Of a stretch of 64,000 nucleotides of DNA, positions 48,936-64,000 are shown in pieces. This stretch comes from Macrostomum hystrix. Its lineage: Eukaryota; Animalia; Platyhelminthes. Each line of letters begins with the position of its first letter. Positions within the stretch are counted from its first letter, which is position 1. Under the pieces are notes generated by a model that did no database searches, was not told the DNA's origin, and saw only the letters and a list, made by a program, of their open reading frames with translations. The stretch lies in the NCBI GenBank assembly GCA_950097015.1, contig CATNEN010000011.1, forward strand, positions 3,906,001 to 3,970,000. The letters run 5' to 3'. Both the position numbers and the translations under genes were made by a program.

Positions 48936-49265
48936 TGACGTGTAATTCACGCTTGAATATAATAAGATAGTAAATACGATATTAGATAGATACGATTCAA
49001 ATTACCATAGAAACGGCGCTTTTGCAGAACAGTGAGCGTCAGTAAAACATGTTGCAAACTAATTTGTACGCTTCGTGGGTATCGTCTATCAGGATGTTTT
49101 CTTGTTCGACCTGACATCACAGCCAGGTAACTTATAGAAATTTAGCATCAAAGTGTTCACAAAGTGTCAGTGAGTGGCCTTATCTGGCTTTTGGTCGACA
49201 TTCACCAATGATGCGTCAGTTTTAAGAAAAGAATTGGCCAAAAAATATTCCATCCAATTTCGCAG

Positions 49266-51423
49266 CCCGAAACACCTGCAAGGTACTACTGAGCATGATT
49301 CCCGCTCTGGCAGTAATCAGCCTATTCCTGACTATCGCTGGACTCATCATCATCTGCGTGGGCTTCGCACTGAGCAAGATTGCTATCGTCGAGTTTGTGC
49401 GCCAGCATCAGGATCGAAAGGATGTCACCTTTGACCTGATGTGAGTGGCTATAGGAGACAGCTTATCATAGTGAGTGCTTATCACAATGAGACATAGAAA
49501 TGACAGCACAGCACAGCCGTATCTTTTCAAAAGCGCTTTCTACAGCTGCTGAGAGTCCGCGGACAATGAAGGGCACCATGCCCAACATAATTTCTAACCA
49601 AGCTGATACTGGTGCCCATTGTTGTGCTGAAGCACTAGGTTATTAGTTTATGGCTGAATGACACGGTTACTCAAACATGCGTTTAAATTCGAACTCACGA
49701 CCTCTCAGTCAAAAGCCCAAAGCTTTTAAGTTTCGGGCTACAAGTTTTCTTGAGTGACAGATACGAATTACTTACAGTAGCGAGTAGGCTTTTATTCGCA
49801 TGGCATTTAAACACTTCTGCCACTATAAAACCAAAAACCAGGTGTCCTAACGCAACTAACAGCATCATCGGCATCGTGGTTGGAAGTTTCACATACGCTG
49901 CATTGCACTTTCTGATTAATTGCGTCACATCAGTTGGCCACGTGGGTTGTCGCCGCTTCGCGCTCGCGGCTACGGTGAGTCCACCATGAAATGAGGACCA
50001 AATTAAAGCGCCTTTTAGACCCGAGCTACTAACAGTAGAAAGAAAACAGCTGGGTACTCTATAAAAATTTAGAACAAGGCCTACAATTTCTCACTCTATC
50101 TGATTAAACCACTTCTAGAATCACGAAACATCGGCATCGTCGAGATATTCAACAGTTCTCGTCGGGTGTCTGGTGACAAAAACCATTATTACAGACATAA
50201 CTGTTCTGCTCACAAAATGTCATCATGAAACCATGCCGACTATCGTTTTGAACTTTGGCTTTGAAAAGTTAATTCATCGTAAAGCCTGGAAAATTTCAAT
50301 CCGTATGGCGTTTGATGGACTTTCATGAAAATCGGTCATTCCATTTGGGAGCTATCGGAAGTAGGCAGTGGGTATTTGGAATAACCCCATCGTCTTTCAG
50401 CCACGCTAATGGAGAATACACTCGCATTCTTTTTAACAGTGGTTGGTCATTGACATGCTGGTCATAGCAGGCTGGAGTCTGCTAGGTTGCATCGCCTTTG
50501 TTCCTCTGTTCGCTCATGTGGCCTATGCCAGTCGTTTGCAGCGCGGAGTGATGGAGCTGGATCTTAACCACTACATTACTGTGCTGGTTGTCAATCCTAA
50601 CCTGGTTGTGTCTATTCCGGCAATTGAAGGCGCTGCATACTTGCTACCTGCGGTAAGGATCCTGCGATTCTGAGTCATCAACTAACTAGGAATTTTAAAG
50701 AAGGCTGCAGCCTAGTGGTTAGAGCGGCTGACTCGAGACTGTTAGGTTGGGGGTTTAACACCCGACTCCACTAGAACTATTTATGTCCTTAAGCAACATA
50801 CATAACTCAGTGTTGCTGCATTTCACCCTGCTTTAAAATAGGTACCAGCATTAGCTGGGTAATAGAAGGTTGGGTGTCGCGTCCCTCCAGTCCATGGACT
50901 GAACAACCGTACGCGTCGTTTTGAAGACCCGATTGGGACAGGTGAAATAATAGTTTTATTAAGAATTACAAAGCACATGAACCACTTGACAGCCTCTTTA
51001 ACTCAATACCACAATACCACAATAACAAAGAGCAGTTTGTTAACTGTCAGTAGGCTTTCTAAGTTTGCTGTAGAGAAAACCGTCATTATATGAAACCTTT
51101 CAGTCATTTCCAACGTTCAGTCCGATTCTGGCACTCTTTATTGGCACCTGGATTGTTGCACCAAGTCTTGTGAGTATCTGGGGAAGGGTCGAGTAACTTT
51201 GAGAGTGTACACTGCCTGACGATGAAATATCACATTGCAGGTGCTTCACGCGTTCTGTCTAGCTTTGAATCTCGGAAAACCTCTTCGGGCTGTTCAGGCC
51301 CCTTCAAAATCTTCAGGAAATCGTAGAAAAAACAATGCCTACCGAGGAAAATCAAAGCAGCAGACCGATCAGGCAGTACCGGCTGGTGCAACGGGCGCTG
51401 TTAGTAGCATGGCGTCAAATTGA
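49266..51423 (+). CDS. Four-TM myelin proteolipid (PLP/DM20/M6)-like protein; 5' end uncertain
   Basis: Exons 49266 (or ATG 49295)-49440, 49863-49974, 50440-50652, 51104-51169, 51241-51423 join in phase (~239 aa from 49295). Four hydrophobic segments: IPALAVISLFLTIAGLIIIC; IIGIVVGSFTYAALHFL...CRRFALAAT|W; GWSLLGCIAFVPLF...LDLNHY; LALFIGTWIVAPSLVLHAFCLALN. Confidence 0.65.
50700..50960 (+). mobile_element. Diverged SINE-A copy in an intron of the proteolipid-like gene
   Basis: CAGCCTAGTGGTTAGAGCG head, GGTACCAGCATTAGCTGGG, CAGTCCATGGACTG at 50888. Confidence 0.8.
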
Positions 51424-52089
51424 GACTGAAAGTTGTGTTTTTACTATGAAAAAACTGCTGAAATGTGACACTACATTAAAACTATTTCTAAAATAGTTTT
51501 TTAACTGAGTTGACGTACGAATTTACTGTGTTTTACCGAATAAACTATTTGAAGGGGGCCGCGGCCAATCGGCTGAATGCATTGAATGCATAGCCCAGTT
51601 TGGCCAAGCCAAGACTGAGGACAATTGAGGACTTTTTAGCCTTACTTTGCTAGGCCTACTATAGCTCTGACTAATGATAACTGCCACCATACGAGGTATG
51701 AATATTCATTCACCACAAACAACGCAGGACTGACTGATGAGGCTCCTAGCGGACTGTTTACTTTATTTGATAACAGTGCGTGACTACAATGAATGATCAG
51801 GAAACAGCAGAACCAATATACTATTCTGTTTTACCAGACACTGTTTTACCAACACCGTATCTACAGCAAATAGCTGAGTAATTGATATTTGAGCCAACAT
51901 ACTAATGCCTATTGCCTTTGAGAGTCAATGCGATTCTAATCTACCATTCAATTAATGAGTCTGCCAGACGCAGGCGAGCGACTCAGGAAGTCAGGAAATG
52001 TGCAAACATTGACGCGAATGCTTTTGCCTCTATAAAACCTCAAATCCATGAGCAATACCCGATATGTTTGGTAATTTACTTAATTGAAA

Positions 52090-53427
52090 ATGGAACGGCT
52101 CCTATTGAGTCTAGTTGCATCATTCTTTCTTCTTCCGAATCTGATTATTTACAGAATCGAATGTCAGGAGCAAAAAGGCACAGACTACGAGGCGGAGCTG
52201 CAGAAGTACCTCAGGAACAACATCACTGATTATAGCCCACGAGTGCGACCTCTGCTAGATCCACATCAAGTGATAAATGTGTCGTTTATAGTGTACATCA
52301 GCCAGATCATTGCAGTGGACAGTGCAAGGCAGAGTGTGAAAATCGCCAACATGCTCTATGCCACCTGGTACGAAGAGCGCCTTGTCTGGGATGCTAAAAT
52401 GTTTGGCAACGTTTCTGTAGTGGATTGGGACAGCAATCAGATTTGGTTTCCGGTAATTTTTGTCTACAATGGTATCGGAGACAATCAGCTGCTGAGCCCG
52501 CAGTTTCCAACTTACATCACGTCCGTGTCGCCGAACAGATCGGTGGTGTCAGCTGTCTGGAAGCAGGAGTGGGAGTTCGCTTGTGATTTCGACATGAGAC
52601 GCTTCCCAATGGATCGTCACCAATGTGACATGGAGCTGTTTGTGAATGACCAGGGCCGAGGCGGTAATAAGGTTCTTCCTTGCAGCGGTAACCTATTAAT
52701 TAATTCCTCGTTGCAATACAATGAGCTTGCTGCCTACACTAACAACAGCGAATGGAGAATGCTCAACCTAAGCACTTTCATCAAGTATCGAAATTACGAA
52801 ATGTTTAAGTCTTCGGCATCAGTTCCGATGCCCACATTCGTGATGCGCATGATCATCGAGCGAGTCTCCGCCTACTACATGCTGAACGTGGTGACGCCTC
52901 TGCTGCTGCTGACGCTGCTGCAGGTGCTCGTCTTCTTCGTGCCCGTCGAGTCCGGCGAGAAGCTGGGCTTCGGCATCACCATCATGCTGAGCTACACCGT
53001 GTTCCTGCTGCTGCTGGACGGAATCCTGCCAAAGTCGCAGTCGATGCCAGCCGTGGCCTCCTTCATCACCGCCGCGATGGCACTGTCAACAACGTCGCTT
53101 TTGCTCACGTCTGTCATCATTCGCTTCCACTTCGCTCCGGAGACGTCACCGATGCCGATGTGTCTTCGCTGCGTGTTCGTGAGCGGCCTGGGCCGCCTCC
53201 TGTGCGTTCAGCGACTTAATCAAGACAGGATAACTCCGTCAAAGTCAGGAAACAGTGAGCACGAAGACAAGACAAGCGATGAAGTTGCCGAGAGTGCGAC
53301 TGCGTCAGCATGGAGACAATCTGACTGGAAGGTGGCTGCCGCTGCTCTGGAGAGGCTAATGATCATTCTCGGCTGCCCGGCGTCTGTGGCGATTTTGCTG
53401 GCCTTTGTGATTGTACCTCTGGCTTGA
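52090..53427 (+). CDS. Intronless Cys-loop ligand-gated cation channel subunit, copy 1 (nAChR/5-HT3-like, non-alpha)
   Basis: Signal peptide, RVRP, WYEERLVW, IWFP, C-x13-C loop CDFDMRRFPMDRHQC, EW, M1-M4, GEKLGFGIT. No vicinal cysteines. First ATG is at 52090. Confidence 0.93.
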   Translation: MERLLLSLVASFFLLPNLIIYRIECQEQKGTDYEAELQKYLRNNITDYSPRVRPLLDPHQVINVSFIVYISQIIAVDSARQSVKIANMLYATWYEERLVWDAKMFGNVSVVDWDSNQIWFPVIFVYNGIGDNQLLSPQFPTYITSVSPNRSVVSAVWKQEWEFACDFDMRRFPMDRHQCDMELFVNDQGRGGNKVLPCSGNLLINSSLQYNELAAYTNNSEWRMLNLSTFIKYRNYEMFKSSASVPMPTFVMRMIIERVSAYYMLNVVTPLLLLTLLQVLVFFVPVESGEKLGFGITIMLSYTVFLLLLDGILPKSQSMPAVASFITAAMALSTTSLLLTSVIIRFHFAPETSPMPMCLRCVFVSGLGRLLCVQRLNQDRITPSKSGNSEHEDKTSDEVAESATASAWRQSDWKVAAAALERLMIILGCPASVAILLAFVIVPLA

Positions 53428-54349
53428 AGCTGTGCAGTCTGCTTAGATGATTGTACTGACAAAATTTAGAGACATTTTGACATAAGTTTAATAAATACTT
53501 TTAGCCCAGTGGTTATTGGCTTCGGATACCATGCGGTCAGCAGTCACATCATCAGCTGTGGTACATATGGTGGAGCGGCCCCCATTTCCACGGACTTTAA
53601 ACAGGTACACCGCCTTCTGAAGCTGCGGCAGTGGCTATCTACTCGTATCTGGTCGAAATGGTTCTTTATAAAAAAGGCTTATAAGTATTAATTTTCTAAA
53701 GCACCTGAATACATAAGCAAAACAAGTAATTCGTTTTAGTTTTGATTTGTTATACATGTATAAAAAGTATTTTATTATTGCACCAAAATTCACAAAAACT
53801 AATCATTTGATGGCAGTGTGAAATAAGTTCTTCCAAGTTAGAGAATTTTTAGAGACTTCAACAAATTGGGTTTTGTAATAAAATGAATTTCCTAGCTGGA
53901 GCGTGAGGAATTTAAAGCTAGCGACTATTCACTATTCACCGGGGTCGGTGTCCTACCAAACGTTTCAAAAGCAGGGAAATCTGGAATTAAATAGCGTTAG
54001 AGACTGTGGTAGCGAGCGAAGCGGAATAGATAAGCGATGAGACCCGCGCGTCGTCCTCCGGCCCGGCGAAACTCCCAATGAAAAAATAATAACACAGTAC
54101 GAACACGAAGACTCGAATAAATTGATTGGGAGTGATTTAACAATTTTACTTAAACTGGCCTTATCCGCGCCCTACTCTTCCCGAGAGGCTCCGGTTGTCT
54201 CTGCTTTCAGCGCTGCCCCGACAGATCCTATCGGTTGGCACTCCTTCTGCCTGACGGCGGAGTCTCCGAAGAGAGCACGTACTGACTTCGACAACAAGCG
54301 CCTATCTAGACCACCCTTGTCAGCGGCGCACTCTCAAGACGCGTAGCGC

Positions 54350-54500
54350 CGAAAGCTACCTAACTGAACAAGCGGAGCGTGGTCGGGCGGGGAGAGACAA
54401 AACAAAGTGGACTTGTTTGCACGTGCTTCTCACAGTGTGAGGCGAATTGCGGAGAACGATAAGAGTCACTGCAAAAACACGCATCCTTTTATATAGAGTC
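54350..54500 (-). promoter_or_regulatory. TATA box with downstream initiator-like CAGT and GC-rich leader (possible LTR or promoter fragment)
   Basis: TATATAAAAGG on the minus strand (54495-54485), GCAGT ~15-20 nt downstream, then a structured GC-rich non-coding stretch. No ORF attached. Confidence 0.3.
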
Positions 54501-54899
54501 ATGTTAACCCCAAATTAGGTCGATCGGCGAGGTGGATGCCTGGCTGTAGCTTGAGCCAAGGCGACAAATCACGGTAGACTTGCGACCGCCGTTCTGAGCC
54601 CCGGCTGGTCCGGCCCGGCTTGGCGTGGGTGACTTTTTAGCAAAAAAAACGTGTCTAAAAATAAGTATTGAATAATAACACGGGGAGATAGAAGGGCAAA
54701 CAAGCTGACACTACAGTTTCAATTCCCTAGTCTTTAACTGTAAAAAGACAACGCGTTTTTCCCCTGGGGAAATACGAGTATTTCAAATACCAGCTGCCTG
54801 ATTCACACTAGCTCCCAAACCGAATGGCCCATTTTCGTGAAAGTCTTCCATCTGAATCCACATTTTCCGCCCTTTACGCCTTTCGAAGCCGTCCAAGTC

Positions 54900-55150
54900 A
54901 GCATCGTCGAGATATTCAGCGGTTCTTGTCGGAGTCCTTGGTGACAAGGACAACTAGTATTGCTCTGGATAAACCTATTTGGCGAATATATCAAGGTTCA
55001 AAGATGAAAAAAGACTAACAATGTTTCGTCAATCCAAAACAAGAGCCGACATTATTACATGATTTTGTGAGAAGAAGGTTTTTGCTTCAACTTATAGTTT
55101 ACGCCACAAGACACCACGACTAGAATTGCTGAATATCTCTACGATGCCGA
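54900..55150. mobile_element. MITE-like element, family C
   Basis: GCATCGTCGAGATATTCAGCGGTTCTTGTCGG ... CACGACTAGAATTGCTGAATATCTCTACGATGC inverted pair, homologous to 10355-10540. Confidence 0.75.
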
Positions 55151-55878
55151 TGCTTTGTGATTCTGAAAGTTGTCTCATCGAATAGAGCGTCACTAGCTTC
55201 ATAATTTTTCAATATGACCCCACAGTTATGCAAGTCTAATTCCGATAATAATTCGCAGAAATACAAGTCCTGCCGATTTTTGACGCACAATTCAAACATT
55301 TTCCCATACGAGCACTGGGCGAGAAGGCTTATGAGATTGTTCTAGTTAAAAATTACAATTAAAATACTAAAAATTTAAAGGCATTGTTCTCCAACAAGAA
55401 ATCTCGCAGTTATATTTGACTTACAATCAATGCATTGCCTTCTTTGTAGGAAGAAGCGAAACACCCGTTGAGGTGAAAAAACGAGATTTCGCCTTTTCAG
55501 AGCCATCCTGAGTACAGTAACTGTAGCAAGTCCTTAGGACCTCATTCAAACAAAGAATTCCAACTTCATGCTCTCCGACAGAAATGCATGCAAATCGAAA
55601 ATTAAAAAAAACGAAAGAAACCTGTTCAAATAATCCAAAAGCAGGCGCTCGCGAAGGTAAAAGTGAAAATCATACCTGGCTTGTGTTTGCCCATACTTGA
55701 ATCAACATTGAATGTGCTGTATAAAACTGGTGGGAATTTTTCCAGATGGCTCAAAAGTCACTTAGCAGCACAGTTAATTGCAAAAGAGATTCAGCTAAAA
55801 GAGAAATCCGCCGCAGTCTCAGATTGACATCATCGTGTCAGGATAACTTTCCACTGTCGGTATTACATTCTCGAATAC

Positions 55879-57195
55879 ATGGCTCTTCCAAAAGCGATTC
55901 GATCTAGTTACTTAAACCTAGCTCTGTTGATTCTACTGCAAAATTTGCGCCAACATCAGGCAACAAAGATTGACAACGAAGCGCAACTATTGAAATATCT
56001 CAAGAATAACATCAGCGACTACCGGCCATCATTGCGTCCAGTGCTAAATGCGCAACAGACCATGCGGATTAGCATTATGATGATGCTAGGCCAGATTACT
56101 GCCATCAATAGTGCGAGAAATAGCGCCCGGGTTTATGCCCACATTTACGCCACCTGGTACGAAGAGCGATTGGTCTGGGACCCAGCCAAGTTTGGCAACG
56201 TCCACGTGATTGATTGGGAGATTGATCAGATTTGGTTTCCGGTCATCTTCGTCTACAACGGAATGGGAGACAACCTGTATCTCAAGCAACAGTTTCCCAT
56301 CTTCATCACTTCCGTTTCACCCAACAGATCTGTGGTGTCTGCAATCTGGCGACAGGAATGGGAGTTTGCTTGTCAATTCGACATGAGACGCTTCCCGTTG
56401 GACCGGCACACCTGCGACATGGAGCTGTTCGTAAACGATCAGGGGCGCGGTCCCAATACAATTGTACCAGAGAATAGCGACCTACTTCACCCGGAACTGC
56501 AATATAACGAACTGGCTGCTTACGTTGAAAATAGCGAATGGCGAATGCTGAACCTCAGCACATATGTGCAGTACAAACAGTACCACATTATCAAAGGACT
56601 AGCGCCGGTAGCGATGCCCACATTCGTGATGCGCATGGAGATCGAGCGAGTCTCCGCCTACTACATGCTGAACGTGGTGACGCCTCTGCTGCTGCTGACG
56701 CTGCTCCAGGTGTTCGTCTTCTTCGTGCCCGTCGAGTCCGGCGAGAAGCTGGGCTTCGGCATCACCATCATGCTGAGCTACACCGTGTTCCTGCTGCTGC
56801 TGGACGGAATCCTGCCAAAGTCGCAGTCGATGCCAGCCGTGGCCTCCTTCATCACCGCCGCGATGGCACTGTCAACAACGTCGCTTTTGCTCACGTCTGT
56901 CATCATTCGCTTCCACTTCGCTCCGGAGACGTCACCGATGCCGATGTGTCTTCGCTGCGTGTTCGTGAGCGGCCTGGGCCGCCTCCTGTGCGTTCAGAGA
57001 CTGGTCCGCAATGGGAGGACGCGACCCGAGGTGGACGCTAGCGACTGCGATGCCAAGAAGTCAGTCGATTTGGGCCCGAGACTCTCGGACTGGCAGGTGG
57101 CTGCAGCGGCCTTGGAGCGTTTAACGGTTTTGCTGGGCTGTCCAGCCGCTCTGGTGATGGCGGTTGTATTTTTATTCCTGCCGCTTCGTAAATAG
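55879..57195 (+). CDS. Intronless Cys-loop ligand-gated cation channel subunit, copy 2
   Basis: Cys loop CQFDMRRFPLDRHTC, same architecture as copy 1, 438 aa. Confidence 0.93.
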   Translation: MALPKAIRSSYLNLALLILLQNLRQHQATKIDNEAQLLKYLKNNISDYRPSLRPVLNAQQTMRISIMMMLGQITAINSARNSARVYAHIYATWYEERLVWDPAKFGNVHVIDWEIDQIWFPVIFVYNGMGDNLYLKQQFPIFITSVSPNRSVVSAIWRQEWEFACQFDMRRFPLDRHTCDMELFVNDQGRGPNTIVPENSDLLHPELQYNELAAYVENSEWRMLNLSTYVQYKQYHIIKGLAPVAMPTFVMRMEIERVSAYYMLNVVTPLLLLTLLQVFVFFVPVESGEKLGFGITIMLSYTVFLLLLDGILPKSQSMPAVASFITAAMALSTTSLLLTSVIIRFHFAPETSPMPMCLRCVFVSGLGRLLCVQRLVRNGRTRPEVDASDCDAKKSVDLGPRLSDWQVAAAALERLTVLLGCPAALVMAVVFLFLPLRK

Positions 57196-58369
57196 CTAGC
57201 TAAGCTTGAAGCACTGAAAGACAATTTAGAATTGCCCTTTTTGTGATGAAGCATCTCAACTCGTACTTTTAGTAAAAAGTAATCGTTTTGTAATGTTATC
57301 AGGCAAGCCAACGGAGTATCCTTGAAGCAGGTTTTTATTATCGTGCCTACTTCAAACATTTTTTCAACGCTCTGATGTGATTAAAATGTGCAGAGCAATG
57401 GGACTGCAGTTATTAAGAAACTGACTCTGTCCAATGAGTTGTGCTGTGAGGATGTCATTGTACGAGGGTATTAAAAGGTCATTAATTGTGCTTGGCATAC
57501 CAAAAATAGCAAAAACGTTTTTAGTGGTTTATCTTTGCTGCTGAACATAGCATAGAGGCTTCAGTAGTACATGGCATAAAGCAAAGAATTGCAGTTTTAG
57601 AAGAAATGTACTCATGTACGCACTCCTGGTACTATATACACTTAAATATGCACTATTTGCTATACTAAACGATATATAGTACTATATACTGCTTTATTTA
57701 TTAATTTAGCATAAAGCACCAAGTCCTTGCGGAAGCTTAATTGGATAAAGAATTGCCATAATGACTGACATTTTTACCCAAGTGATTTTGATTGGCAGGC
57801 AATTGTAACTACTTTAGTCAGTCCCTTACTTTGGACATAAGTCACAAGCAATCAGCTAGGCAAAAAAGTTTAACTTCTACAATTGGTTGCCATGGAAACA
57901 GCAGAGAAAGCATCTCAAGCGCAGAGAGTATTGCAGAAAATTTCTGTTCAATCTGTTTCTAATAGGAAGTTTTATTCACAGGAAAATATCTTCATATATT
58001 TGTTTGGTAAAACGATATTATTTGCCTAAAGACTGACGAGAAAAGTTCAGTGAGAGTTAAGAGAATGCATACAGAAAAAAATTGTCCTTTTAAACGATCA
58101 AGATTCGGTTAACTTTGGTCATAAGTACTCGTATAGTTAGCAATTAAATCCCCATTACGGAAATGCAAACGTTTACTCACGCCTATAGAAACAGCCTAAG
58201 CATTATGGATTCCATCATACGAGCCTCTTTGGTGTATGCTCACTTCGATAGATTGACCCTGTTATCTCTTTGTTATCTCATATAATCCCGAATGTATCAT
58301 GCTATCCCATTGATCCCATAGTATCACCATGGTATCGAGTTTGATCCGCCTAATGTCCTTTATAGATAA

Positions 58370-58677
58370 TAATAATAATAATAATTGATTACACCTGCCC
58401 TAATCGGGTCAGATGTGCAGCCGACAGCACAGCCGCAGCTATTGAGGGGCGCATCTGAAGACTGCGTACAGCTGTTCAGTCCATGGACTGGGGGGACGCC
58501 ACACCCACCTTCAATTATCCCAGCTAATGCTGGTACCCATTTAACAGCTGGGTGAACTGAAGCAATGCAGAGTTAAGTGTCTTGCTAAAGGACACAAATT
58601 GTTTAAGTGGAGACGGGAAAGAACCCCCGACCTTCAAGTCGTGAGTCCGACGCCCTAACCACTAGGCTACAACCTCT
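58370..58677 (-). mobile_element. SINE-A, full-length copy
   Basis: Close reverse complement of 6564-6878, including the (AAT)n tail and tRNA head. Confidence 0.9.
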
Positions 58678-59025
58678 CGTCTTCTTCGAGAGACCGTAAA
58701 GACGGTCTCTTACTGCGAAGACTCAATTTATAGATAGACAGACGTTAAAACACGATAAGCTGTATGTTAGTAGAAGCACTAGTTAGACGCATTGTAGGAC
58801 GCGAAATATTGCGTCCATAGAGAGCCATAGAGAGTCATTTTATTTTCATGATGGCTATAATATTTGCCCTTCTTAATGACTATAATCTGGACGCTTCGTT
58901 CTACAATGCTTGTGACACTATTCTGTTTATTTATTCAGTCTCAATTGAAATCCTATCAATGAAGGGACAGCTTAGATAGACTAAAACTTGTTGAAACTGA
59001 CCAGACTGATAGATTGCGCATGCAG

Positions 59026-60366
59026 TCAAATAAAGGGCCTCAGAAGGAAAACAAAGAAGATGGCCACCGTAGCCACGCAGCCAACGATGACCATGAGTCG
59101 TTCCAGTGCGGCAGCAGCCACCTGCCAGTCGGAGCGACTCTCTCGCGGCACTGACGTGTTCTCGCCATCCTTGACGCTTGTCTTGCCATCGCAGTCGCTG
59201 GCGTCCACCTCCGGTCGCGTCCTCCCATTGCGGACCAGTCGATGAACGCACAGGAGGCGGCCCAGGCCGCTCACGAACACGCAGCGAAGACACATCGGCA
59301 TCGGTGACGTCTCCGGAGCGAAGTGGAAGCGAATGATGACAGACGTGAGCAAAAGCGACGTTGTTGACAGTGCCATCGCGGCGGTGATGAAGGAGGCCAC
59401 GGCTGGCATCGACTGCGACTTTGGCAGGATTCCGTCCAGCAGCAGCAGGAACACGGTGTAGCTCAGCATGATGGTGATGCCGAAGCCCAGCTTCTCGCCG
59501 GACTCGACGGGCACGAAGAAGACGAGTACCTGGAGTAGCGTCAGCAGCAGCAGAGGCGTCACCACGTTCAGCATGTAGTAGGCGGAGACTCGCTCGATCT
59601 CCATGCGCATCACGTATGTGGGGATCGCTACTTTAGGCATTTGCTTGAAGAGCTCATAATACCTGTAAACTACGAATGTGCTGAGGTTTAACATTTGCCA
59701 TTCGCTGTTTTCAACGTAAGCTGATAGCTCGTTGTACTCCATTGTGGATGGAATCAGCATGTTGCCCTTCAGCGGCTGAACCATCGCGTTACCTCGGCCC
59801 ATGTCGTTCATGTACAGCTCCATGTCGCAGGTGTGTCGGTCCATTGGGAAGCGTCTCATGTCGAACTGGCAGGAGAAATCCCACTCCTGCTTCCAGTTGG
59901 CGGTCACCACCGTTGTTTTCGGCGAAATCGACGTCAGGTACACAGGAAACTGCGCCTTCAGCTGCTGGTTGTCTCCGATGCCGTTGTAGACCAAAATCAC
60001 GGGGAACCAGATCTGGCCGCTGTCCCAATCGGCGACGTTGACTCCACCGAACTCGGCGGGATCCCACACCAGGCGCTCCTCCTCCCAGTTGGCCGTCATG
60101 AAGGCGGCAATCTTGACACTCTGCTTGGCGCTGTCAATTGAGACAATCTGACTCAGAATGATAGTGACTGACACATTCACGGGCTCTGATGGGTTCAGTC
60201 TGGGCCGCACCATCGGATTAAAGTCGGCGATGTTGTTCTTTAAGTACTTCATCAGCTCGTTTTGATAGTCGCTTTTGGTCGTGTTCTGAGCCTGCCCGAT
60301 GCTGACAGATGCGCAGCAGGTAAGCGCCATCAGCTCTAATAGCTCAAGAAGATTTTTTGCCAGCAT
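59026..60366 (-). CDS. Intronless Cys-loop ligand-gated cation channel subunit, copy 3
   Basis: Cys loop CQFDMRRFPMDRHTC. First ATG at 60366 (alternative 60330). Convergent with copy 2. Confidence 0.93.
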   Translation of the reverse strand: MLAKNLLELLELMALTCCASVSIGQAQNTTKSDYQNELMKYLKNNIADFNPMVRPRLNPSEPVNVSVTIILSQIVSIDSAKQSVKIAAFMTANWEEERLVWDPAEFGGVNVADWDSGQIWFPVILVYNGIGDNQQLKAQFPVYLTSISPKTTVVTANWKQEWDFSCQFDMRRFPMDRHTCDMELYMNDMGRGNAMVQPLKGNMLIPSTMEYNELSAYVENSEWQMLNLSTFVVYRYYELFKQMPKVAIPTYVMRMEIERVSAYYMLNVVTPLLLLTLLQVLVFFVPVESGEKLGFGITIMLSYTVFLLLLDGILPKSQSMPAVASFITAAMALSTTSLLLTSVIIRFHFAPETSPMPMCLRCVFVSGLGRLLCVHRLVRNGRTRPEVDASDCDGKTSVKDGENTSVPRESRSDWQVAAAALERLMVIVGCVATVAIFFVFLLRPFI

Positions 60367-61199
60367 TTTGACGGACAAATTTGTTTCGTTAAGTTGAGTT
60401 TTCTGACAGCCCTCGGCCAAGAATCTTCATGACTTAAATGATGCAAGTTTAGTCCATTGTTCATTGTTTTGTCCGCAAGCTACCAATTTAGCTGAGAGAA
60501 ATGAGTGTAATTTAGGAATTTCATCTCCTACACAAATTGCCCACTTATTCTTGCTTGAGAATCTTCAAGTGCTAGCAACCGGCTGAGATGGGCACTCTGA
60601 CCTGTCAATTTCATCATGCAATCAATCAAAAGTTCAAATTTTTTCTCAAACTCGCTGTATTGATAGCGACGACTCACTGGATAGAATCTCGAAAAATAGC
60701 TTCCTTTTCATTAAAACCGGTGAGTCTTGCTCGATTAAGTTTTCTGTATACCCTACTTGCAGTAGTGTTTTTTGCTGCGTAAACTCTTGTATTATATGGT
60801 AACTTTCCGAGGACGCAATTTAATCGTATGCAATAATTTATTTTCAAATAAACAGCTTTTTCGTATTAGAAACTTACTTCTTTAAGTAGTTACGAGCGAA
60901 CTTTACTTTACGTTTAGCAAAATATTTTTCTAATAATAAAACACTGCCTTTCCCTTTCCAGTGAAAATTGAACTCGTGATCTCAAGGAGTGAGGAAAAGT
61001 GAAGCTAATTAAGGCGAACCTTCAAAGTGAATTGAGTTTTACTGCGCTTGAAATATAATTCGATTAGTGTTCTCGGAATAAGTTGTTTGTATGCTCTGTG
61101 AGATTTGAAAGAAGTGACATACTCAGGACTATACTATACTCATACACATACTATACTCATAGCTTGTGCTCAGAATCAATGATCTCTGCTTTGATCTCG

Positions 61200-61408
61200 C
61201 GGATGTCCTAATTGGCTGGACTGAAGGGACGCCACGCCCATTTTTAGTTACCCCAGCTGATGCTGGCACCCATTGAACAGCTGGATGAACTGAAGCAACA
61301 CAGAGCCAAGTGTCTTGCTAAATGACCAAATTGTTCCACCGGAGTCAGGAATCGAACCCCTGACCTTCAAGTCGCCATTCTGACACCCGAAACACTAGCC
61401 TACAACTG
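61200..61408 (-). mobile_element. Diverged SINE-A copy
   Basis: GGAATCGAACCCCTGACCTTCAAGTC head, GAACTGAAGCAAC...AAGTGTCTTGCTAAA core. Confidence 0.8.
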
Positions 61409-61990
61409 TTGAGCGAGGCCTCGCCGTGGATTCGGTTTATGCATGACCGCATATTTCTTCTATATATTTAGTAAAACATAACATTTTTATAGTTCCGAAT
61501 TTTTTTTCTCGAAAAATCAGTGCTGCTTTCTAGGAAATAGCAGAAATTAGCCCCACCAACAAGGGGAGCATGAATTCACGCCCTCCTGCGAGCTCTTCCC
61601 TCAGGTGGCTGCATCTGCTCCGAAATGAATCGCAGAAAAACCAATAAGAAACAGACCAAGAGAGGACAGGAAAACTGGCAATGAGGCACAGGTGTGCGGC
61701 GACCGGGAAGAGGGTAGAGATGCAAAGCGACAGAGAAGCGCCGATGATAAAATAGAAAGATTTACTATCTAGATTGAAAAGCAAAGCGGGCCGAATTAGG
61801 GAAATTGAGACGGCTAGTAGTAAGAAAATCGACCTAGGTATACACACGACAGCGAGTTTTGTAGTTTGGCAACTATTCTGCCTGCTGCTGCTATTATTGT
61901 TGTTGGCAGCAGACGAAAACGATACAATTAAGGTTTCGCCTATTAATTCCTAGATAAACAATCTGCGAACTGGCAAAGGCTGCAGTTGAA

Positions 61991-63916
61991 ATGTCAGCTG
62001 GAGCCCCAAAGAATACAAAAGTCTCTAACGCTGGCATGGCAACAGCGAGGGTCGCGCCTCAACCAACGGGCCTGTCATCCGACTCCGAATCTGCTCATTG
62101 GGAACAGCTCTCTGCGGTGCAGTACTTTTACCTTTTTAGACCTGAATTGATAGAATAATATCTGACTGTTGATTTATTTGAATTCCAGAGCGCAGCCAGA
62201 GAGTTTCAACGCAGGCTGAGACAGTCGCCGCATCAGAACATTGTTGACATTTTCAAATGCGGCGTCAGAACCTCCGGTTCGAGACCCTGCCTCGGCTGGC
62301 GACGTGACGCTCGGTCGCCATTCACCTGGCTCAGCTATCAGGAGGTGAATCTTTTATGCTCGTTGGCAGTCTTGGAAGTGCTGTGGGGTGGTGGGTGCTA
62401 TTGGGTGGTTGGAGCTGTGGGGTGGTTGGTGCTGTGAGGTGGTTGGTGCTATGGGGTGGTTGGTGCTATGGGGTGGTTGGTGCTATGGGGTGGTTGGTGT
62501 TATGGGGTGGTTGGTGCTATGGGGTGGTTGGTGCTATAGGGTGGTTGGTGCTATGGGGTGGTTGGAGCTGTCGGGTGGTTGGTGCTGTGGGGTGGTGGGG
62601 CCATACAGTGGCTTATGCTGTGGGGTGGTTGGTGCCACGGAGTGGCTGACGCTGTGGGGTGATTGATGCAGTGGTGGTGGGTGCTGAAGGGTGGTTAGTG
62701 CTGTGGGGTGGTGGGGCCATACAGTGGCTTATGCTGTGGGGAGGTTGTTTCTGTGGGGTGGTGGTTGCTTTGGGGTGGTTGATGCTAAACTAATTTGTTG
62801 AATATAAACTTATATTCTGTTGAGCCTTTTAAAATATCGGCTCGAGCCGTAACATAACAAATATCTTATGTCATACATTGTCTGACATAAGATCTAAAAT
62901 AAAAAAAACTATTAACATTTAAACTTTTCTATTTACGAACATTTTTCCGCTATAACCGCAGCTTTTCAACAAGCCTTGTAATATAATTTTTTGTTCTATT
63001 TTTAGAACAAGTCACGGTCATACGTCACGCGATAATGACGTGCTGAAAGTGAATACACGATTCTATTTTTAGCTCATCGATCAAATTCAAGGTCAGTCGA
63101 CGCGTGGTAGAAAATAATGACCGATTTTACTTCTTTCTTAGAATTCTAGTTTATTTGACCCGCGATGCTTCGTGACGAAATTGGGGAGTGTCTAAAAGTA
63201 CAACTCTTCATCTCAAAATATCTGACTACTTCTGACGTGCTGATCTCGAGCAAAAGAGCTTCCAATATCATGCTTAGGCAAGCACGCGGTGCATCATATT
63301 ATGTTACAAAGAAACTTCACGCAGCCGCTACACCGAATAATCTCAAAGGTGCTCAGCCAGGCGCACAGCTTCGGCTCTTACCTGTGCGGTGGCCGGCCGC
63401 GACTCAGCGTGGGCGATCGAGTGGCCATCTTGGCCAACAGAAATCGACCCGAGTGGTCCATAGCCGAGCTCGGCTGCGCCCTGTTCAGCTTGGTTCCCGT
63501 GGCCGTTGTCGAGTGTCCTTCGCTGGCTTCGGGAGACTCATCCACAATGGAGGAATCGTCGCAGCAGCTCGCAGAGCTAGACCGCGCCATCCTAGCAGTC
63601 GGTGGAGTGTCAGCGGTCCTGTTGCTCTGCGACTCGGACGCCAGCGTGCAGCTGAGACGCCTGGCAGCCACGCGCAGTCGAAGCCGCGGCACCGGCCTAC
63701 GCGCTGTCATCGTGTCCACCCAGAAAGGCGACTTTGGCGAGGCGCTGATGTCAAACAATGCGGCGATTGGCGTTGACACTGACGAAGCTGAGGTGGACGG
63801 ATTGGCTGTCATCGACTGGCAGACCGCCCTGCGGCTGGGCAGATCGGCGCCGCTGACACCGGAGCCGGCTGGCCGGGAAGACCTGGCGGCCATCTGCTTC
63901 ACTGGTGGCACGTGCG
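61991..63916 (+). CDS. Long-chain fatty-acid-CoA ligase (ACSL-like, AMP-binding), 5' part; continues past the window
   Basis: Exons 61991-62116 (tentative), 62189-62344 (IVDIFKCGVRTSGSRPCLGWR...FTWLSYQE), 63349-63916 (FGSYL...VAILANRNRPEW...EDLAAICFTGGTCG). Confidence 0.75.
62380..62790. repeat. 17-bp G-rich minisatellite in the ligase intron
   Basis: (TGCTATGGGGTGGTTGG)n with variants. Confidence 0.9.
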
Positions 63917-64000
63917 GTGAGCGACTGACAGGTTTTCTGGCCCTCCTCTGACTCGCAACTGTCCCGATGTCGCAGTAATACAATTTAATAATATTCGCTC

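Follow-up and report, generated by a model that had tools for sequence, protein, structure and literature searches.

Cephalopod chemotactile receptors (CRs; octopus CRT1 and squid CRB1, PDB 8eis, 9e6b and 8eiz) derive from nicotinic acetylcholine receptors and are encoded by intronless, clustered genes, as are other chemoreceptor families (review PMC11526382); their pore is of the cation type with the motif GEK, the M3-M4 loop is short, and neither a loop-B Trp nor a Cys pair in loop C is present. Intronless tandem expansions of nicotinic genes have also been described in lophotrochozoans, namely in molluscs and annelids (Jiao et al. 2019, PMC6896357); retroposition was proposed for the molluscan intronless receptor genes, and flatworms, Platyhelminthes and Schmidtea did not come up in a text search of the paper. 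A further spiralian nicotinic-like orphan, Alpo4 of Alvinella pompejana (PDB 8bx5; PMC10338036), has no loop-C Cys pair and is unresponsive to acetylcholine and serotonin, and a sterol-like molecule fits its orthosteric site. Here we report on 64,000 nucleotides of the flatworm Macrostomum hystrix (assembly GCA_950097015.1, contig CATNEN010000011.1, positions 3,906,001 to 3,970,000; this whole stretch is referred to as the window, and positions are counted from its first base), which carry three intact, intronless genes, A, B and C, of the Cys-loop receptor superfamily (pentameric ligand-gated ion channels, pLGICs). Sequence comparisons place A/B/C in a Macrostomum-restricted family derived from nicotinic acetylcholine receptors, and the most distinctive feature of the cluster is gene conversion restricted to the pore. 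We consider it the most likely reading, with reasonable though limited confidence, that the encoded channels would be opened by a non-cholinergic ligand.

The three genes are uninterrupted open reading frames (ORFs), A and B being codirectional and C convergent with B. The initial annotation of the window had described intronless, clustered genes derived from nicotinic receptors, and our data agree in that all three ORFs are single-exon with nicotinic subunits as their top PDB matches; its ATG starts at 52090 and 60366 were recovered at the same coordinates:

52090-53427, + strand: gene A, single-exon pLGIC subunit of 445 aa from ATG, with signal peptide, Cys-loop and M1-M4 (Pfam ligand-binding domain 1.6e-28, transmembrane domain 1e-22)
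55879-57195, + strand: gene B, single-exon pLGIC subunit of 438 aa (ORF and Pfam)
59026-60366, - strand: gene C, single-exon pLGIC subunit of 446 aa from ATG (ORF and Pfam), best PDB match human alpha7

Pfam PF02931 (Neur_chan_LBD) and PF02932 (Neur_chan_memb) scored above cut-off in A, B and C, which assigns them to the Cys-loop/pLGIC superfamily. Each has a hydrophobic signal-like segment at its N-terminus and an intact C-x13-C Cys-loop, C(D/Q)FDMRRFP(M/L)DRH(Q/T)C, both Cys of which are present in 13/13 family members, followed by four predicted transmembrane helices, of which M3 and M4 are joined by only ~60 residues. The AlphaFold (AF2) secondary structure, a beta-sandwich and then the helices M1-M4, agrees with this layout; the model is of low confidence (mean predicted local distance difference test score, pLDDT, 64; predicted template modelling score, pTM, 0.49) and served for fold and helix layout only, its top Foldseek matches being the alpha4beta2, alpha7 and Torpedo receptors. 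The closest solved structure by sequence is human alpha7 (gene C, E 2.9e-43, aligned residues 50-392), and Alpo4 is a distant match to the window protein (E 2e-25).

In a codon-level alignment, A, B and C have the same DNA sequence over 283 consecutive bases, which cover the end of M1, M2, M3 and the start of the post-M3 helix:

52928-53210, + strand: identical 283-bp tract in A (higher-identity region 52821-53216)
56714-56996, + strand: identical 283-bp tract in B (B and C are 98% identical over 56608-57058)
59243-59525, - strand: identical 283-bp tract in C (higher-identity region 59181-59632)

High identity spans 396-451 bp, and the flanks are just 60-75% identical. By chance, 283 identical columns would be expected with a probability below 1e-24, even on synonymous sites alone. 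Within M1-M3 the synonymous difference grows with the genomic distance between paralogues, as seen in the proportion of synonymous differences (pS) between the trio A/B/C and other family members:

M1-M3, within the trio A/B/C: pS 0.01-0.03
M1-M3, trio versus family member L004 (0.78 Mb away): pS 0.11-0.14
M1-M3, trio versus family member L005 (another contig): pS 0.33-0.37
M1-M3, trio versus the remaining family members: pS 0.5-0.65

The G+C content at third codon positions (GC3) is 0.85-0.86 in the converted tract, compared with 0.60-0.75 in the ligand-binding domains (LBDs) of the same genes and 0.64-0.75 in M1-M3 of unconverted relatives. The simplest reading of these patterns is repeated gene conversion confined to the pore module (M1-M3), which is probably GC-biased. 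In the corresponding gene array of M. lignano (see below) the pore region shows ordinary conservation only.

Among the LBDs of A, B, C, L004 and L005, pS is about 0.63-0.80, that is saturated, non-synonymous differences amount to 0.19-0.30, and omega (the ratio of non-synonymous to synonymous change) is ~0.15 where estimable. Saturated synonymous sites in combination with this omega value point to old genes under purifying selection. Most of the variation among A/B/C falls in loops D, F and C of the pocket, and the coupling elements are mostly invariant:

Invariant positions across A/B/C, pocket: loop D 18%, loop C 29%, insertion plus loop F 39%
Invariant positions across A/B/C, elsewhere: loop A 86%, Cys-loop 80%, pre-M1 87%, M1-M3 99%

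The residues of the agonist site were mapped by alignment to human alpha7 and in an 86-sequence alignment of nicotinic-like and outgroup proteins:

Loop-D Trp position: M in A, H in B, F in C
Loop-B cation-pi Trp position: N in A, B and C
Loop-C Cys pair position: MF in A, II in B, LF in C
Second loop-C Tyr (Tyr198 position): M in A, M in B, I in C
Loop-A Tyr (Tyr93): retained in A, B and C
First loop-C Tyr (Tyr190): retained in A, B and C

The loop-B motif is ELFVNDQG in A and B and ELYMNDMG in C, and loop C reads YEMFKSSASVPMP in A, YHIIKGLAPVAMP in B and YELFKQMPKVAIP in C. Relative to alpha7, there is an 11-residue insertion after loop B and loop C is 4 residues longer. The loop-C pair position is hydrophobic in all 13 family members, which sets these proteins apart from nicotinic alpha subunits, and with only Tyr93 and Tyr190 remaining of the tested aromatics A/B/C do not have the make-up of an acetylcholine-binding subunit on either face. 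In the 86-sequence alignment the loop-B position is non-aromatic only in 12/13 family members, two sister genes, an octopus CRT1-like protein, one unnamed representative and a catfish 5-HT3A-like outgroup protein, and it is Tyr instead of Trp in the family member L011 and in three muscle-beta-type sequences. The loss of the loop-B Trp in the family is not a chance feature.

M2 starts with SGEKLGFGITIMLSYTVF in A/B/C, with Glu at -1' (GEK), Leu at 9', Val at 13' and Asp at 19', and has no motif of the Pro-Ala-Arg type; as judged from these residues the pore is of the cation-type pattern, which puts A/B/C on the nicotinic/5-HT3 branch. This pore, the short M3-M4 loop, the missing vicinal Cys of loop C, the absent loop-B Trp within the two quoted motifs, the M, H or F in place of the loop-D Trp and a longer, variable loop C had all been listed in the initial annotation, and each was found as described. 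Its summary that the receptors lack the aromatic box was overstated: three of the five aromatics and the disulfide are gone, but two aromatics remain, the loop-A Tyr and the first Tyr of loop C. Given established nicotinic-receptor pharmacology and the loss of both Trp and the disulfide, canonical acetylcholine binding at either face of A/B/C appears unlikely.

A six-frame search of the Machtx_v2 assembly of M. hystrix (220,453,370 bases, 42 contigs) identified 11 full-length, intact, single-exon family members with 44-100% identity to C, which gives the genome-wide count of intronless copies that had been suggested as a check on the initial annotation. Four are located on the contig of the window (A, B, C and L004), one on contig 37 and six on contig 39, four of the latter within one 12-kb array. 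All 11 are without the Cys pair, the loop-B Trp and the loop-D Trp, L011 having Tyr at both Trp positions.

Word-index searches of protein databases, with one protein or with a 13-sequence profile, returned almost only two M. lignano-type proteins, low-complexity words crowding the candidates, so that an exhaustive profile search took their place. Run against 1.84 billion protein representatives, it detected only 4 family proteins beyond the M. hystrix genome, including one that clusters with the M. lignano protein PAA92206.1, a UniRef fragment from M. lignano and one that is 93% identical to an unannotated ORF on an M. lignano contig. All profile matches above 250 bits (multi-domain models aside) were traced to M. 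lignano or are presumed to come from there; the best single-domain match outside M. lignano scored 218 bits versus 618 bits for the M. lignano-type protein, and the next single-domain matches, at ~200 bits, are "alpha-10-like" proteins of corals, amphioxus and sea star. The gene for PAA92206.1 is itself intronless and is flanked on M. lignano contig NIVC01000059.1 (L031) by two intronless paralogues:

NIVC01000059.1, 7863-9188: unannotated complete intronless pLGIC ORF flanking PAA92206.1
NIVC01000059.1, 12783-14105: unannotated complete intronless pLGIC ORF flanking PAA92206.1

The order in this array is conserved, L010-L006-L011 on M. hystrix contig 39 corresponding to Ml_1-Ml_2-Ml_3 in M. 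lignano. Since the family and the array are present in the same order in both species, they predate the split between M. hystrix and M. lignano. A counterpart of the subclade A/B/C/L004/L005 was not found in M. lignano, which is uninformative given that the database holds one representative per 50% cluster and that the annotation misses members.

Phylogenetic trees were computed by maximum likelihood (LG+C20, quick search) with a 5-HT3A-like protein as the root. Monophyly of the flatworm family has 99% support in the Shimodaira-Hasegawa-like approximate likelihood ratio test (SH-aLRT), the family joins two further intronless sister genes of M. hystrix with 100% support on a stem of 2.27 substitutions per site, and the flatworm clade falls inside the nicotinic-like sequences. 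In line with nicotinic descent, the top matches in the PDB search were all nicotinic subunits (alpha7 152 bits vs 5-HT3A 96 bits). The phylogeny proposed in the initial annotation thus gave a lineage-restricted, nicotinic-derived clade, seen in Macrostomum only, on a long branch away from the canonical subunits. The sister genes are a tandem pair, L012 and L013 (G000:C38:829259-832186). L013 has Arg in place of the -1' Glu (PSRK vs SGEK), and its charge selectivity may differ; the L012 ORF begins within the ligand-binding domain, and this gene may be truncated.

The published M. hystrix annotation averages 4.8 introns per gene, and the canonical nicotinic genes of this genome match exon by exon. 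At least 19 pLGIC genes in the genome are single-exon, spread over several separate clades. Pairwise homology among the units A, B and C ends at the ORF borders. A retroposed origin of the three genes is plausible, which is weaker than the "probably retroposed" of the initial annotation, and no parent gene was identified. No A-run as a poly(A) remnant was found in the 400 bp downstream of each stop codon, and a repeat scan of 49000-63000 revealed no flanking direct repeats, no search having been aimed at short target-site duplications; such marks are not expected to survive, since the saturated synonymous divergence (dS) indicates that the duplications are too old. More generally, the M. hystrix genome has at least 151 matches to pLGIC transmembrane domains, ~29 of them in open frames of at least 380 aa, a repertoire comparable in kind to the molluscan expansions.

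With respect to cephalopods, an Octopus vulgaris protein in our data set (P0010) is the orthologue of the chemotactile receptor CRT1 (467 bits). In the quick maximum likelihood tree it groups with Haliotis, Lottia and Sinanodonta sequences and apart from the flatworm clade, which places A/B/C outside the cephalopod CR clade. P0010 is without the loop-B Trp, as is the whole flatworm clade, and its sampled molluscan relatives all keep this residue; the Trp was therefore lost independently in octopus and flatworm. Deep independence of the flatworm and the molluscan divergent clades, as drawn in the free quick tree, is unreliable: a constrained tree that unites the flatworm clade with the molluscan divergent clade including P0010 was 11 log-likelihood units better and was not rejected (approximately unbiased test, p-AU 0.75). 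Both groups may go back to a single ancient, divergent lineage of spiralians, or the result may reflect attraction between long branches. Hence, where the initial annotation spoke of an independent lineage, this is supported for the Trp loss relative to octopus but not fully for the deep history of the clades.

RNA-derived contigs from four public M. hystrix runs were placed on 55300-61200, which covers genes B and C. Two of these runs carry SMART template-switch and Nextera adaptor ends, in agreement with the SMART-Seq libraries that the genome study made from single-worm RNA. Transcribed and candidate regulatory elements are:

55818-57475, + strand: RNA-contig-covered stretch of gene B (5' untranslated region, ORF and 3' untranslated region) in four runs, ending at an ATTAAA signal
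57470-57475, + strand: ATTAAA, a polyadenylation-type signal for B, where RNA contig coverage stops (57475)
52031-52038, + strand: TATAAAAC motif, candidate core promoter of A, 59 bp 5' of the ATG (motif match only)
55720-55727, + strand: TATAAAAC motif at B, 159 bp 5' of the ATG (motif match only)

Gene B is transcribed. The B contigs show zero to few differences from the assembly, and in one wild worm there are 12 differences over 571 bases of B, 11 of them within the B-specific domain and the other at 56713. The intergenic DNA around B has no contigs, apart from an upstream signal at 55497-55693 and repeats, and AATAAA or ATTAAA signals are present 3' of all three genes. The RNA depth on B is low in these whole-worm samples. 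Three contigs from the two SMART-Seq runs exit the shared near-identical region into sequence unlike B, and we infer that at least one further paralogue sharing this region is probably transcribed. Tissue information was sought in the available literature by M. lignano gene id, and no mention was found.

Taken together, A, B and C would be functional subunits of pentameric cation channels. Acetylcholine would not open these channels via the canonical site; instead, another ligand would bind in a remodelled, more aliphatic pocket. The three genes would provide different sensor domains on one common pore that is kept identical by gene conversion, and the subunits may co-assemble, since identical transmembrane faces would make them interchangeable. 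Several points weigh against this scheme. Two residues of the aromatic box are retained, so that the ligand may still be a small cation. Non-agonist-binding subunits are normal in heteromeric nicotinic receptors, and as most pLGIC families are variable in loops C and F, variability there is a weak sign of ligand diversification. In the four runs there were no RNA contigs specific to gene C, only contigs on the shared tract. Finally, the assembly was built from PacBio continuous long reads (CLR) with arrow and five pilon rounds (PMC10468722), and short-read (pilon) polishing may slightly inflate the perfect identity of the tract.

This last point leads to the question of whether the 283-bp identity as a whole could be an artefact of assembly or polishing and not the result of gene conversion. 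Multi-mapped short reads can homogenise near-identical tracts, but polishing removes few differences only and cannot make such a tract beside neighbours that are 25-35% diverged. Moreover, the stepwise increase in synonymous divergence with distance (0.02 to 0.12 to 0.35) and the raised GC3 are biological signatures, and the wild-worm RNA contigs pass from B-specific sequence into the tract with one or two differences; we regard an artefact as improbable. It is very unlikely, and slightly more so, that A/B/C are decaying, non-functional retrocopies. The intronless state, the low RNA signal for B and the missing specific signal for C fit such a view, but 11/11 family members have complete frames despite saturated synonymous sites, omega is ~0.15, and orthologues are preserved in M. 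lignano.

Two other alternatives accept functional receptors and differ in what the subunits do. A/B/C might be environmental chemoreceptors, the flatworm counterpart of the cephalopod CRs, placed in epidermal or head sensory cells and responding to external, possibly hydrophobic, ligands. The convergent loss of the loop-B Trp in the octopus CRT1 lineage, the replacement of the Cys pair and one Tyr by aliphatic residues, the concentration of variation in the pocket loops and the intronless, clustered genes known from other chemoreceptor families (PMC11526382) are consistent with this. Nevertheless, selection is purifying overall and not diversifying (omega ~0.15), with saturated dS precluding site-level tests, and a small family of 11 members whose order is partly conserved in two Macrostomum species is unlike fast-turnover repertoires; the very low whole-worm expression of B fits either few sensory cells or marginal use. 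We treat an environmental role as a minority possibility, and the word chemosensory in the initial annotation is so far unsupported. A little less probable again is that A/B/C are non-binding structural or accessory subunits of acetylcholine-gated heteromers, comparable to vertebrate beta1, alpha5 and beta3. The alpha signature is absent, the gating elements (Cys-loop, pre-M1 and M2-M3) and the pore are conserved, and the genome offers many intron-containing canonical nicotinic genes as possible partners. However, known accessory subunits keep the loop-B aromatic (mammalian beta1 has Tyr), whereas the present family is also without the Trp of the complementary face and is separated from the canonical subunits by a very long branch, and three old, divergent LBDs under purifying selection are hard to explain as structural filler. 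Gating by a non-cholinergic ligand is accordingly the reading that we prefer.

The DNA between and around the receptor genes contains other elements. The published Macrostomum spliced leader agrees over its first 38 nt with 58693-58730 (+ strand) and diverges from there on; RNA contigs at this position reach a depth above 10,000, with cDNA adaptor preceding the matching stretch and a wide variety of sequences following it. The element resembles a fragment or pseudo-copy of the spliced leader that adjoins an interspersed repeat, and not an obvious spliced-leader RNA gene. A short interspersed repeat with 79-85% identity occurs at 58484-58680, at 61217-61406 and, inverted, at 50702-50914, and is abundant in RNA contigs. 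Scans of 50000-62000 for tRNA (ARAGORN) and against Rfam gave no match, and a tRNA-derived (tRNA-SINE) origin of the repeat near 58.5 kb is unsupported, as ARAGORN found no tRNA. An imperfect tandem repeat (spacings 17, 50-51 and 116 nt) at 62371-62785 lies just 5' of a GC-rich region that starts an unrelated ORF, 63289-63951.

With sensor domains diverged to saturation beside a DNA-identical pore, this cluster is a clear case from nature of an ion channel in which concerted evolution is restricted to one domain. The mosaic pattern suggests that the three subunits may have stayed exchangeable for one another in a single pentamer; if the modular reading is true, concerted evolution maintains subunit compatibility. 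If gating is non-cholinergic, the flatworm case would join the octopus chemotactile and the insect ionotropic receptors as transmitter receptors rebuilt for new ligands. In its widest form, as a modular family of divergent sensors for non-cholinergic (possibly environmental) ligands on one conversion-kept pore, the locus would represent a second, convergent origin of nicotinic-derived chemoreceptors, a view that we hold only tentatively and think doubtful. Part of the family has orthologues in M. lignano, a species in which transgenesis is feasible (PMC5173321), and in situ hybridisation is routinely applied to Macrostomum (PMC10468722).

Compared with the known systems, the window proteins share with human alpha7 the fold, the Cys-loop, the pattern of GEK and 9' Leu, the loop-A Tyr and the first loop-C Tyr; they differ in having neither the Cys pair nor the Trp of loops B and D, in the longer loop C and the post-loop-B insertion, and in an intracellular loop that is ~90 residues shorter. 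Alpo4 likewise has no Cys pair but keeps a complete aromatic cage (F103, W159, Y199, Y205 and W65; PMC10338036), of which the Macrostomum family has lost three positions. The cephalopod CRs are likewise nicotinic-derived, intronless and clustered, with the same pore type, short M3-M4 loop and missing loop-B Trp and Cys pair, but they are not orthologous to A/B/C (~21% identity to the window proteins), and unlike them the flatworm proteins retain two Tyr, that of loop A and the first of loop C, and have the 11-residue insertion after loop B. As in the lophotrochozoan expansions, the M. hystrix pLGIC repertoire is large; the molluscan members sampled here keep the loop-B Trp, unlike the Macrostomum family, and domain-restricted gene conversion is not among the retrieved passages of PMC6896357. 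The cluster is thus a variant, specific to its lineage, of the nicotinic-like expansions already known from spiralians and not a new kind of system.

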